A stretch of DNA of 64,000 nucleotides, taken from the NCBI GenBank assembly GCA_002269645.1, contig NIVC01000732.1, forward strand, positions 186,001 through 250,000. The letters run 5' to 3'. This DNA comes from Macrostomum lignano. Taxonomy: Eukaryota. The position numbers were made by a program, and so were the translations under genes. The notes under the pieces are model-generated. The model worked only from the letters and a program-made list of their open reading frames with translations. It had not been told where the DNA came from and did no database searches. The stretch's first letter is position 1. Each line of letters starts with the position of its first letter. Of this stretch, positions 6,628-27,034 are shown one piece after another.

Positions 6628-9600
6628 ATGGCTCCCAAGGTAGTTCAACAGAAAAGTCAAGGCGGCAAGACTATGATGGTCGGCAATGCACAGAAAATTT
6701 TGTCAACTGAGAAGATGACAAAGAAAATAGTTAAAAATAAGGTAAGCGAGTGCCTGTGTGAGTTGTTGCAAGCTTCAACGCCTCACGCCAGCTTGTGTGT
6801 TTAAATAATTAAACCGCTCATTATCAGGAGTCGCTAATCAAACCAGCAACCGGGCTCACTGCCAACGATGTTCAATCCCTCTACGGCTCCGACATCGCTT
6901 GCATGGCTGAGCACTTAAACGCACTGTTGAAAGACAGCTCTCTGGCGGCCTACTGCCTGCCTCTAGACCAGGTGAACGTCTTTAGTCGCCTATACGAAGG
7001 TGTGCTACAGTGCGCAGTCGCGAACCTGCTTCAGCCGGGCGCCGTCGACCCTGCGGTGGTGAATTTGAAGCCTGCCAGCGAGTTGGAAATGTTGCAGAAT
7101 AGAAACCTCGGCCTGGCATCGCTTCGTCAGTTGGGCCTTTGCGTCAGCCAGTCGGACGAGATGCGCCCGAGTCTGGATAGGCCGTTCCGCATGACGCCAC
7201 TGCTGGTCCAAATCTTGCGCTTGGTTTCGTTGGGACGAATGAACTTTCGTGATAATCATCTATTGGTGCACCTGTTCACAGACTGGGGTTCCGATCCGCA
7301 AGATGCTAAGTGAGTAGTAGTAGTAGTAGTAGTAGTAGTAGTAGTAGTAGTAGTAGTAGTAGTAGTAGTAGTAGTAGTAGTAGTAGTAGTAGTAGTAGCA
7401 GTAGCAGTAGCAGTAGTAGTAGTAGTAGTAGTAGTAGTAGTAGTAGTAGTAGTAGTAGTAGTAGTAGTAGTAGTAGTAGTAGTAGTAGTAGTAGTAGTAG
7501 TAGTAGTAGTAGTAGTAGTAGTAGTAGTAGTAGTAGTAGTAGTAGTAGTAGTAGTAGTAGTAGTAGTAGTAGTAGTAGTAGTAGTAGTAGTAGTAGTAGT
7601 AGTAGTAGTAGTAGTAGTAGTAGTAGTAGTAGTAGTAGTAGTAGTAGTAGTAGTAGTAGTAGTAGTAGTAGTAGTAGTAGTAGTAGTAGTAGTAGTAGTA
7701 GTAGTAGTAGTAGTAGTAGTAGTAGTAGTAGTAGTAGTAGTAGTAGTAGTAGTAGTAGTAGTAGTAGTAGTAGTAGTAGTAGTAGTAGTAGTAGTAGTAG
7801 TAGTAGTAGTAGTAGTAGTAGTAGTAGTAGTAGTAGTAGTAGTAGTAGTAGTAGTAGTAGTAGTAGTAGTAGTAGTAGTAGTAGTAGTAGTAGTAGTAGT
7901 AGTAGTAGTAGTAGTAGTAGTAGTAGTAGTAGTAGTAGTAGTAGTAGTAGTAGTAGTAGTAGTAGTAGTAGTAGTAGTAGTAGTAGTAGTAGTAGTAGTA
8001 GTAGTAGTAGTAGTAGTAGTAGTAGTAGTAGTAGTAGTAGTAGTAGTAGTAGTAGTAGTAGTATTGCGTGTTTGAACTTGATTCTGAGTAAAATTCAAAA
8101 CTCACTTTAAAGGGCAATTCTAGCCACTGAGCGAGAAAAGATCTTGCAACTCTGGGTGAACTTACCAGCTTCGAAAAGAAGGCACTACAGATACTGTGCT
8201 CAAAGACTTTGGCGCAGGACTCGCAGACTCCAGCGTTTATGCCCGGTTACTCTGGGTTGTTGCTCCACTCAAAATCCGAGAAACTTTGCACAATACCAGT
8301 GAAGTTATAAAGCACAGGGATTTTCTCAAACGTGCTCAATTAGTCGTTTCAAATGCAGAAAAGCTGGGCATTAAAGGAGTGATCAACCCCGAGCATATCG
8401 CAGATGCTGGAAAAGACGAATTGTCCAGCACAAAAGGTTTGCACAACAATTTAATCAACACGGCATTTCTGTACCGAATATTTCAAGCTTATCCAAATAT
8501 CGATGAGCCAAAGGTGACGAAATCTGCATCTGGAGTTTCTGCTCCAACGCCTGAGCAGCTGAGAGCCTGGTGCAAATGTGGCGCGAGCGAGGAGACCCTG
8601 GTCAGATGGCTCAACTCATTTGGACAAATTAATCCCGTTGTTTCCCTGGAGACGGATCTGTGCAATGGGATCATTTTGCTTCAGGTTGGACGAATTAGTT
8701 TTGTTTGACAGTTTAGTCAATGCGACTAGCCATCTGCGCCCCCCATTGGGGAGGCAACACGAAGGATTAAAAAAAACTACATTTAGATTTCGATCTTGCG
8801 CAGTTGCTTTTGTTACGCTCGTAGTATCTTAATGAAAAATATTTAAAGCAAAAAGCATCAACCCTGAAAGCCAGCTATATCTAGCATAAGATATCAGCAT
8901 CCCCTGTAAGAGCTTTAGGCCTCCCTTTAAGCCAGGGGTCTGCAAACTTTTTACCTCGGATGCCAAAAAGAGAACCTAGCGCATGACTGCTGGCTAGAGG
9001 AGAAGAGAGAGGAGAGGAAATAGAAAAGAGAGAAGATAGATCGGAGAAAGTAGAGGCGAGGGAATAAAATACAAGAGAGGAGACGATAGGAGAAATGAAA
9101 TAGGAAAGGAGAGAGGAGACGAGAGAAGGAGGGATCAGAGAGGAGAGAAGAAGAGAGAGGAGAAGAGGAGAGAAGAGAAGAGGAGAGGAGAGAAGAGGAG
9201 ACGAGAGAAGAGGAGAGGAGAGAAGAGGAGAGGAGAGAAGAGGAGAGAGGAGAGGGGGGAAGGAAGTGAGGAGAGAAGAGAAGGACGCACGCAACAAACA
9301 TTGAGCAGTGAAGTTTTAAATGACCCAAGCGCCGATAGAGTAGTTACGCGGGCCGCCCTGCTTTAAGCCATGGCTTAACCCCAACTCTCCCTTTGATCTA
9401 CCTTTGGCTTGGCCTACCATTAACTTCTAATTGACCCTCGGTATCTCAGTAAACCCCCATGAGCCACAGCATTTCAGTGCAATGTGAACCTTAGTCAATG
9501 TGAGGTTAAGACAATGTGAGGTAGGTAACGTGAGGTTTAGTCAATGTGAGGTTAAGATAATGAGAGGTTTAAGCGATAAGTATGATTGAGTTTTGAATTA

Positions 9601-25300: not shown

Positions 25301-27034
25301 CTCTGCACTGCTTCAGTTCACCCAGCTGTGAAATTGGTGCCAGCATTAGCTGGGGTAATTGAGGGTGTGTGTGGCGACCCCCAGTCCTTGGACTGAACAG
25401 CCGTACGCAGCCTTCAAATGCGCCACGCAATAGCTGTGGCTGAGCTGTCGGTTGCACATACGGCTATTAGGGCAGGTATAACCAATCATCATTGTTATTA
25501 TTGGATGCACACAGGAGTCTACTGCTTACTGACTTCTCTTCGCACCATCACGCAGGTGTGGGACGCCATGTTTCCCGGCTGCGTTCCCTGGAACAAGGTC
25601 AAGCTTGAAGAGGTAAACCTGAGCTCTAGACGCAAATTCACCTGGATGGCCAACTGCGACATTGCTATTGGCATCGGGCAGAAACACGGCATCACCAGGG
25701 ACGTCTGCTCTTCTGGCAACATCTCTACTGGCGAGGTAAAGTACATCGCTTCAATGGTGTTCCTCATGATGCGCCTGCACGCCCAGCTGACTCGCAAGGA
25801 GATCATCGGCGAAGACAGCAAAGTTGCCGATTTAGACGATAAAGGGCTGGTTAAATGGTTCAACGAAATGATGGAGAAATATCGCAGCGACTTCCGACTG
25901 AAGAGTGTTGATGTAAGTTTGAGTAAAAGTAGGGCTTTTGGTTCTGGATTCCCCAAATGCCACATTCCCCAAATGTCACATTCCCCAAATGTCACATTCC
26001 CCAAATGTCACATTCCCCACATGTCACATTTCCCAAATGTCACATTCCCCACATGTCACATTTCCCAAATGTCACATTCCCCACATGTCACATTTCCCAA
26101 ATGTCACATTCCCCACATGTCACATTTCCCAAATGTCACATTCCCCAAATGTCACATTCCCCAAATGTCACATTCCCCAAATCTCACATTCCCCAAATGT
26201 CACATTCCCCACATGTCACATTTCCCAAATGTCACATTCCCCACTTGTCACATTTCCCAAATGTCACATTCCCCACTTGTCACATTTCCCAAATGTCACA
26301 TTCCCCAAATGTCACATTCCCCAAATGCCACATTCCCCAAATTTAACATTCCTCACATGTCACATTCCCCAAATGTCACATTCCCCAAATGTCACACTCC
26401 CCAAATGTCACATTCCCCAAATGTCACACTCCCCAAATATAAAAAATCGAACCCCGGCGCACTCTTCATTGCCCTGCAAACTCAGGATCCCAATCTTAAA
26501 AACACCAACGCGCTGGGCTACCTCGGCGAACGAATCCTGGTTGAGAACAACCTGTTGTCAAGCGGTCCGGCCGATTTTCCAAGAAAACCAAAGGTCGCAG
26601 AGGCGGCGAAGAAGCCGGCAGCAGCCGCAGGCACCGCGGGCAAGCGAACGCCGCCGCCAGTTGCGCCGAAACCGAAGATGCCGGCAAAGATGCCGCCAAA
26701 GAGTAAAAATGCAGCCGACAGCAACGCGGAAGAGGACGACGGAGCTAAAAATGAGGAGCCGGCGGCTACGAATGACGACAACGGAGAGGAGGAGGAGCAG
26801 CAGACGCCAGCTGAAGCGCACAACTCCGGCGGTGGCGCTTGGCAATTCAACAGCGTCGAACAGGTGTCGTCGGACCCGGCGCTGCTGACGACATTCTCCG
26901 TAACTGCCATCCTGATGTTCAGCAAGGCAGGGGTCATTGTCTACGCTAGCAAGCTGGGACCGGAGACAGATGCAGCCGTGTACAGAAGTGTCTTGATGGA
27001 GTTGAACGGTTTGTCAATGAAAACCTGCAATTGA
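22368..27034 (+). CDS. Fimbrin/plastin-like paralog 4 (~693 aa)
   Basis: Exons 22368-22445, 22921-23435, 23874-24456, 25556-25912, 26486-27034 sum to 2082 nt in frame, with the same intron phases as the other copies. Confidence 0.87.
22473..22787 (-). mobile_element. tRNA-derived CORE-type SINE, full length
   Basis: On the minus strand: A box TAGCCTAGTGG, B box GGTTCGATTCC, CORE-like block GTGTCCTTAAGTAAGACACTTAACTC...CAGCTGTAAAATGGG and an (AAT)-rich tail. Homologous copies at 25200 and 49535. Confidence 0.85.
24550..24830 (+). mobile_element. Second tRNA-headed SINE-like element (3' end uncertain)
   Basis: GGGGAGCCG TAGCCTAGTGG (A box, 24559-24569) and GCTCGATTCC (B-box-like, 24604-24613). 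The body is repeated at 16845-17040. Confidence 0.6.
25200..25495 (+). mobile_element. CORE-type SINE copy (degenerate head)
   Basis: TCCTTGAGCAAGACACTTAACTC...GGACTGAACAGCCGTACGCAGCCTTCA, same body as 22473-22787. Confidence 0.85.
25951..26436. repeat. 16-bp minisatellite (CCCCAAATGTCACATT)n in intron 4 of paralog 4
   Basis: Tandem units between the GTAAGT donor (25913) and the CAG acceptor (26485). Confidence 0.95.

Follow-up and report, generated by a model that had tools for sequence, protein, structure and literature searches.

Fimbrins (plastins) are textbook actin bundlers and, to our knowledge, their combination of an EF-hand head with four calponin homology (CH) domains hardly varies among eukaryotes. 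The fimbrin of Tetrahymena is not known to contain any EF-hand motif. The headpieces of the yeast and plant fimbrins do not bind Ca2+, and Tetrahymena fimbrin has been cited as Ca2+-independent (PMC10533516). In T-plastin, the second of the two actin-binding domains (ABD2) is the first to bind actin, via CH3; CH4 makes no actin contact and, in the unbound state, packs on the actin-binding surface of CH1 and autoinhibits ABD1 (PMC9478642). The T-plastin substitution R594A, located in CH4, increases both binding and bundling, and in the presence of Ca2+ the EF-hand domain acts to suppress bundling (PMC9478642). Here we analyze a 64,000-nucleotide stretch of the genome of the flatworm Macrostomum lignano (contig NIVC01000732.1, positions 186,001 to 250,000; hereafter the window, numbered from its first letter), which carries four co-oriented paralogues at 6628-27034 on the + strand. 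We consider it somewhat better than an even bet (roughly 0.55) that this fimbrin-derived, headless, testis-expressed tandem family encodes proteins that bind or cross-link actin during spermatogenesis independently of Ca2+.

Manual models, built from splice sites and reading frames, bear out the description of the cluster given in the initial annotation: all four co-oriented genes have five exons with intron phases 0, 2, 0, and 0. On the + strand, the exons of copy 1 (c1) are located at 6628-6741, 6828-7309, 8113-8684, 9619-9978, and 10471-12954, yielding a product of 1336 amino acids (aa) when one T at 8162/8163 is deleted; those of c2 are located at 14306-14377, 14480-14982, 15351-15927, 16300-16656, and 17296-17715 (642 aa), those of c3 at 18808-18876, 18954-19456, 19644-20217, 20531-20887, and 21173-21592 (640 aa), and those of c4 at 22368-22445, 22921-23435, 23874-24456, 25556-25912, and 26486-27034 (693 aa). 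The first exons are short, as had been pointed out, encoding 38, 24, 23, and 26 aa in c1, c2, c3, and c4, respectively. A tblastn search of the window with c2 as the query matched c1 to c4 and nothing else, revealing no fifth copy. The GenBank models on a near-identical contig correspond in length (640, 642, and 693 aa), with the c1 counterpart being 1174 aa long. One of these models, BOX15_Mlig006537g3 (693 aa), differs from c4 by 4 residues, and the model orthologous to c1 (PAA62691.1, BOX15_Mlig000473g1, Mlig000473.g1; 1174 aa) keeps its reading frame open and has a repeat insert that is shorter; both are encoded on contig NIVC01001909.1 of assembly GCA_002269645.1. Database annotation of the genes goes no further than "hypothetical" or "CH domain-containing" protein. 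Intron 4 of c4 is filled (25948-26438) by a 16-nt minisatellite of approximately 31 copies, which happens to preserve the frame, such that exon 4, intron 4, and exon 5 form a single open reading frame (ORF) of 538 aa (25418-27034). Retention of this intron would insert a PKCHIPQMSHSPNVTF-type repeat directly before the CH4 insert described below; the GenBank model removes the intron.

The products are colinear with the four-CH core of fimbrins, with CH1-CH2 corresponding to ABD1 and CH3-CH4 to ABD2. Pfam detects CH domains in three stretches (E values of 1e-27 to 4e-29), and phmmer searches against the PDB sequences rank the fimbrin cores first (Arabidopsis fimbrin core 1pxy, 1.2e-34; Schizosaccharomyces pombe fimbrin core 1rt8, 7.7e-31; plastin-3, 2.1e-27), with filamin reaching only 4e-3. 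The alignments with fimbrins are colinear over query residues 51-509, that is, from CH1 to early CH4 (DPSLKS). Consistently, 1pxy and 1rt8 are the top Foldseek matches of the full-length AlphaFold2 (AF2) model of c3 (predicted local distance difference test [pLDDT] score of 80.7, predicted template modeling [pTM] score of 0.81), with approximately 600 aligned columns and TMt of 0.66-0.70, supporting the earlier assignment of the genes to fimbrins rather than to another CH family. A compact "horseshoe" core with a CH1-CH4 contact is suggested by this pTM and by the TMt to the closed 1pxy and 1rt8 structures, in a prediction that drew on an alignment dominated by canonical fimbrins and for proteins whose R594 equivalent, located at the interface, is replaced. 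Several fimbrin motifs are retained (LLRW.N, DSK.Y..LL, R.W.NS.G, and DP.L.S), and the extra segment that had been noticed late in CH2 is real, measuring approximately 12 aa rather than 9.

Beyond these motifs, the family stands well apart, its identity to canonical fimbrins being only 20-30%. When 1.84 billion cluster representatives were scanned exhaustively with HMMER, the result was a near set composed of M. lignano proteins and only one protein from outside the species, P0010 (672 aa, 33% identity, E value of 2e-80, residues 39-633), and a far set of many matches with 23-35% identity and E values of 1e-46 and weaker; those of the latter that were looked up are fimbrins, plastins, or CH-domain proteins of scattered eukaryotes. 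The family is thus lineage-restricted, as the initial annotation had proposed, and a separate homologue search with the family alignment recovered the same M. lignano proteins and none further. P0010 is encoded on a 2155-nt contig, evidently an mRNA, assembled from SRR30276804, and is built like the family members, with an (L/F/Y)ING motif at the N-terminus, an insert in CH4, and the helices at the C-terminus. A search from a cestode fimbrin retrieved no M. lignano protein; this search was word-limited and does not settle whether M. lignano has a canonical fimbrin.

The EF-hand headpiece, whose absence had been suggested from the short N-terminal regions, could not be found by any of the approaches used. 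Pfam searches with the family proteins detect no EF-hand family at E <= 1-10, and tblastn with a canonical headpiece gave no match. Only 45-60 residues precede CH1, with residues 1-27 being disordered by AF2 prediction. It is nevertheless conceivable that headlessness is an annotation artefact, with EF-hand exons located farther upstream or joined via alternative first exons, considering that the examined sequence comprises the window and one other contig and that the region upstream of c1 is broken by a long terminal repeat (LTR) retrotransposon and a 1.3-kb microsatellite. We regard such an artefact as extremely improbable: the copies are spaced by 0.8-1.35 kb, leaving gaps of merely that size ahead of c2 to c4; a hidden Markov model (HMM) of 34 plastin headpieces, which detects its positive controls at 6e-29 and 7e-17, produces a best E value of 2.9 on the six-frame translation of window positions 1-28000; and in-frame stops are located 18, 126, 60, and 9 nt 5' of the ATGs of c1, c2, c3, and c4, respectively. 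Furthermore, the published c3-type transcript RNA1509_3867 (2294 nt, type 5UTR_CDS_3UTR) fits the 1923-nt coding sequence and has no space for a 300-nt headpiece, and the P0010 mRNA, with an in-frame TGA 18 nt 5' of its ATG, is likewise headless. With Pfam, the headpiece HMM, the upstream stops, and the transcript length all in agreement, the headless architecture is established short of 5' rapid amplification of cDNA ends.

The second departure from canonical fimbrins concerns CH4, which is interrupted at the same site in all copies. The lengths of the insert had been estimated at about 45 aa in c2 and c3, 90 aa in c4, and 700 aa in c1, which is close to the measured values. In c1 (10543-12753, + strand), the insert comprises 737 aa (575 aa in the other assembly), is T/S/K/Q/D-rich, and consists of a 30-nt tandem repeat encoding 10-aa, DAKKTSGTQP-like units (Tandem Repeats Finder period of 30, 58 copies, 10805-12572). 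The c2 insert (17365-17517, + strand) is 51 aa long, acidic, and Ala/Gln-rich; the c3 insert (21242-21394, + strand) is also 51 aa long, with AF2 pLDDT below 50 at residues 529-554 and 565-574; and the c4 insert (26558-26833, + strand; 92 aa) is Pro/Lys/Ala-rich in its first half and acidic in its second. In P0010 the insert measures 60 aa, and in c0, an additional copy present on NIVC01001909.1, 271 aa. The earlier description of the insert as low-complexity applies to its variable part but not to its end, since in every member it is closed by a conserved GAWLF(N/D)SV..VSS-type motif. Considering the variation in length, the insert may be read as a tunable loop.

Three approaches concur that CH4 resumes after the insert, as had been claimed. 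First, in a MAFFT alignment of 48 sequences, including 44 canonical fimbrins, ALGYFGERV..LVENNL pairs with a canonical helix (e.g., IICDLIDSIRPSSVKYEIL) and TKFSVTAILMFNKAGVIVYA..PETDL pairs with NA..YAISIARKLGARVFALPEDI, with the additional residues located between the two blocks. Second, hhalign aligns the N-terminal half of the family CH4 with 36 canonical CH4 domains at a probability of 93.6%, and places AILM..K.G..VYA of the C-terminal half on YAIS.ARK.GA..F, the same helix as in the MAFFT alignment (P = 0.0012). Third, in the AF2 model of c3, confidently predicted helices flank the insert on either side (residues 477-490, 510-521, 590-606, and 622-639), with residues 529-574 being disordered, and a model of ABD2 only (pLDDT 80.5) matches the ABD2 structures 3byh_B, 7r94_F, and 6vec_a over 293-303 of 306 columns (TMt 0.64), such that the structural alignment crosses the insert; Foldseek matches of this model that end ahead of the insert have TMt of approximately 0.5. 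The Pfam CH model misses CH4 even at E <= 10, and it does so in the native, insert-deleted, and alternative-junction forms alike, so that Pfam can neither confirm nor refute this domain. Thus, four CH domains are present in one chain, with CH4 being recognized by hhalign, MAFFT, and AF2 with Foldseek and not by Pfam; of the outcome that the initial annotation had anticipated from profile searches and structure prediction, the lack of an EF-hand and the predicted four-CH fold hold, but Pfam recognizes three CH stretches only. A different junction, in which GAWLF..VSS..LTKFSVTAILMF forms the last CH4 helices and the C-terminal 35 aa are an extension, was obtained from a six-sequence MAFFT alignment and overruled by the 48-sequence alignment, hhalign, and Foldseek. 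The Foldseek match to 2d85 (L-plastin CH4) covers only 136 columns, probably on CH3, and was excluded as evidence.

Published data show that the genes are transcribed and place them in the male germline. A complete 2294-nt transcript, RNA1509_3867, listed as "LCP1" with a CH-domain Pfam match and best matches to L-plastin and Fimbrin-5, displays the in situ pattern "testes" (Grudniewska et al. 2016, PMC5173321, supplementary file 5). The forward primer for "LCP1" maps to exon 4 of c3 (20681-20700) with 1 mismatch, and the reverse primer is exact in both c3 (21498-21517) and c2 (17621-17640); judging from these positions, the target of the in situ and RNA interference (RNAi) experiments is a c3-type gene. 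The c1 gene, Mlig000473.g1 (RNA1509_20952, listed as "PLS1"), is classed as Testis and germline_FACS, with regional read counts of 9/326/217/193, in columns read here as head, testis, ovary, and tail (Brand et al. 2020, PMC7336406, supplements). Transcripts of both the copy-3 type and copy 1 are thus present in published tables, and among the tissues guessed at in the initial annotation, sperm agrees with the in situ and positional RNA-seq data. RNAi of "LCP1" resulted in "no gonad maintainance phenotype" (PMC5173321); sperm morphology lay outside the scoring of that screen, and paralogues could compensate for the loss of a c3-type product. The 2 sources do not address the domain architecture, and a full-text literature search found no paper on these genes as such, with gene-level data appearing in supplementary tables only.

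The number of copies depends on the sequence considered. The count of four made in the initial annotation is accurate for the window but not for the family, with contig NIVC01001909.1 (a public Mlig_3_7 contig) carrying six tandem copies in the order c0, c1, c2, c2', c3, c4. Throughout most of the region that they share, this contig and the window are colinear, with roughly 90-99% identity outside of the repeat arrays, and the window therefore represents the same locus in another haplotype, homeologue, or assembly. The c0 gene, located upstream of c1, encodes 898 aa, with a polyproline and Ser/Gly-rich CH4 insert, whereas in the window its place upstream of c1 is taken by an (AGAT)n array of 1.3 kb together with an LTR retrotransposon. 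If present, c0 would fall past the left edge of the window; the number four therefore depends on the limits of the window and on the haplotype. Both the copy number and the length of the c1 repeat (575 vs. 737 aa) vary between the haplotypes, homeologues, or assemblies (L003 3841-8888; merged NIVC contig 23744-28759). The LTR-retrotransposon-type element (371-4869, + strand), directly upstream of the cluster, contains two long ORFs, one gag-like (zf-CCHC) and the other encoding a 1268-aa pol with protease, reverse transcriptase, RNase H, and integrase; given that NIVC01001909.1 has c0 in the corresponding stretch, the element may be a haplotype-specific insertion.

The Nei-Gojobori ratios of nonsynonymous to synonymous substitution rates (dN/dS) are 0.16-0.22 for all pairs of copies, and approximately 0.2 in exons 2-4, with dS being saturated between c1 and the others and approximately 1.3 between c4 and c2 or c3. 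By this measure, the copies are old duplicates under purifying selection. The c2/c3 pair is a mosaic: exons 2 (14480-14982 vs. 18954-19456) and 5 (17296-17715 vs. 21173-21592) are approximately 98% identical, with dS of 0.035 and 0.021, respectively, whereas exons 3 and 4 share approximately 76% protein identity, with dS of 0.65 and 2.1, which points to recent gene conversion of both gene ends.

These rates bear on the possibility that the genes are decaying duplicates with little or no function, in which case the architecture described above would merely reflect relaxed drift. Some copies do carry possible defects. Exon 3 of c1 in the window has an extra T (TT for T) at 8162/8163, reading AACTTACC instead of AACTACC in NIVC01001909.1 (in wider context, TGGGTGAACTTACCAG in the window and TGGGTGAACTACCAG in NIVC01001909.1); this +1 frameshift leads to a stop at codon 262, and deletion of one T restores a clean ORF of 1336 aa, the extra T being either an allele-specific pseudogenizing change or an assembly error. 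The donor of c2 intron 3 is GC (GAG|gcgagt, 15928-15929), as opposed to GT in the other assembly contig, and c2', between c2 and c3 on NIVC01001909.1, is frameshifted and annotated as 300 aa only. The lack of a gonad-maintenance phenotype upon RNAi of the c3-type gene would also be compatible with decay. Nevertheless, dN/dS stays at 0.16-0.22 even where dS is saturated; the ORFs of c2, c3, and c4 (640-693 aa) are uninterrupted, as is that of c1 in the other assembly; complete transcripts and a testis in situ signal have been published; and the same architecture is kept in a relative with 33% identity. We therefore consider decay very unlikely.

More serious doubts concern the activity of the proteins. 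Across 44 canonical fimbrins, 84 alignment columns reach a conservation of at least 80%; we took these as the conserved positions and considered a position lost when it is replaced in at least 3 of 4 family sequences. The family keeps 44 of the 84 positions and has lost 32. In the helices of the actin-binding surface, the CH1 motif LGLxWQ is changed to L(L/I)VQ, with the core Trp replaced by Val or Leu, and the CH3 motif WQLMR to F(L)MMR, with WQ replaced by F-L. These losses, together with the failure of Pfam to see CH4, the RNAi result, and the possible defects in some copies (the c1 frameshift, the GC donor of c2, and the c2' frameshift), weigh against a role of the proteins as actin cross-linkers. 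The column of T-plastin R594, occupied by R in 93% of the canonical fimbrins, contains N in c2 and c3, S in c4, and H in c1.

Accordingly, the main rival explanation is that the proteins are neofunctionalized relics of fimbrins, which have kept the four-CH scaffold and lost actin cross-linking; they might bind single filaments only, or have a partner other than actin (cortical microtubules, for instance, or other structures specific to sperm), and the insert would be the working part. Nearly 40% of the canonical positions are lost, including those in the CH1 and CH3 actin-binding-surface helices, identity to canonical fimbrins is 20-30%, CH4 is invisible to Pfam, and the composition of the insert is copy-specific (polyproline and Ser/Gly in c0, Lys/Thr/Ser repeats in c1, acidic in c2 and c3), resembling diversified partner-binding or spacer modules. 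On the other hand, purifying selection acts on the whole core rather than on the inserts alone (dN/dS of approximately 0.2 in exons 2-4), a compact fimbrin-like core of four CH domains is predicted with high confidence, and 44 of the 84 conserved positions are still in place. Weak Pfam matches to CAMSAP_CH and CH_2 are below the threshold and are produced by canonical fimbrins as well. We thus treat the loss of cross-linking as a genuine minority possibility and favor Ca2+-independent cross-linkers or binders of actin in spermatogenesis.

The proteins keep ABD1 (CH1-CH2) and ABD2 (CH3-CH4), which modeling predicts to form a compact, fimbrin-like core. The disordered insert, with its copy-specific length and composition, enters the CH4 loop directly ahead of the helix bearing the R594 equivalent, which is the counterpart of the T-plastin helix that packs on CH1 and autoinhibits ABD1. 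With the R594 equivalent replaced and the insert adjoining it, the second actin-binding site is likely to be regulated differently; this site may be either constitutively released or gated via the insert, with phosphorylation or the binding of a partner as conceivable triggers. F-actin would be bound or cross-linked during spermatogenesis without Ca2+ control, although both bundling and Ca2+ independence are deduced here from the sequences. More speculatively, the Ca2+-sensing headpiece could have been functionally replaced by a fast-evolving disordered CH4 module at the CH4-CH1 autoinhibitory interface, in which copy-specific inserts (acidic, Pro/Lys-rich, polyproline, or phosphorylatable K/T/S repeats of variable number) would set ABD1 release, filament spacing, or partner recruitment, with the family building the elaborate, sexually selected Macrostomum sperm (feeler, bristles, and shaft). 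We attach a low probability to this extended scenario.

The window is eukaryotic in character, with introns, microsatellites, and retroelements. Very long and nearly perfect microsatellites are located upstream of c1 ((AGAT)316, 5101-6366) and in intron 2 of c1 ((AGT)250, 7313-8063), and a (TATC)85 microsatellite is present in intron 2 of c2 (15001-15340). Spacers and introns of the cluster also contain minisatellites (12991-13657, 17986-18491, 10033-10255, and 16011-16233, with periods of 25/51, 20, 14, and 14/28/42 nt, respectively) and short interspersed repeats with similar ORF translations in opposite orientations (~22512-22790 on the + strand, ~25224-25457 on the - strand, ~16816-17145, and ~24643-24972). 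ARAGORN detected no tRNA in the window, although ~22700-22790 of the ~22512-22790 repeat looks tRNA-like. Downstream of the cluster are genes for an MFS-type transporter (~30000-33300, + strand; annotated on the public contig as MFS_1, 572 aa), an rRNA adenine dimethylase (RrnaAD; 35509-36288, - strand), and a long coiled-coil protein without a Pfam match (42143-48451, - strand), followed by a reverse-transcriptase fragment (54083-55037, + strand). Two tandem arrays, an HFRHSKDT-type repeat of approximately 3 kb (56644-59778) and a (Thr)n-coding trinucleotide repeat of approximately 1.8 kb (59825-61663), are open in several frames, with no evidence for coding.

RNAi and transgenesis are available in M. 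lignano, which serves as a model of sperm evolution, and the function of the family is therefore directly testable. A headpiece-less fimbrin with a large CH4 insert is not described in the literature searched. Given that the head has been dropped and that CH4 tolerates 50-740 disordered residues next to the residue governing T-plastin autoinhibition, the flatworm family constitutes a natural experiment on the coupling of the two actin-binding sites and on the purpose of CH4. Should the proteins not bind actin, their interest would be merely local, as a divergent gene family confined to one lineage.

Among the known systems, alpha-actinin, filamin, plectin, and dystrophin/utrophin share with the flatworm proteins the CH fold and an ABD-type pair of CH domains but are weaker structural matches, and, unlike the flatworm family, carry only one ABD in each chain, with rod or repeat domains after it; by sequence, filamin is a far weaker match than fimbrin (4e-3 vs. 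1e-34). The Ca2+-insensitive fimbrins, namely those of yeast and plants, with degenerate EF-hands, and that of Tetrahymena, illustrate that a lack of Ca2+ control over bundling is already established within the fimbrin family; however, none has been reported with a CH4 insert, the flatworm proteins have no headpiece at all, and the flatworm genes are germline-specific paralogues in an animal. The closest relatives, by both sequence and structure, are the canonical fimbrins/plastins (human PLS1, LCP1, and PLS3, yeast Sac6 and Fim1, and Arabidopsis FIM1-5; structures 1pxy, 1rt8, and 7r94), which have four CH domains in the same order and are colinear with the family from CH1 to the C-terminus. 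Compared with them, the flatworm family lacks the EF-hand headpiece and the switch helix, has a CH4 split by a disordered insert of 51-737 aa and a CH2 insert of approximately 12 aa, and is only 20-30% identical, with 32 of the 84 conserved positions lost, including the R594 equivalent. Finally, whereas the canonical protein is encoded by one broadly expressed gene, the flatworm genes form a testis-restricted tandem family.

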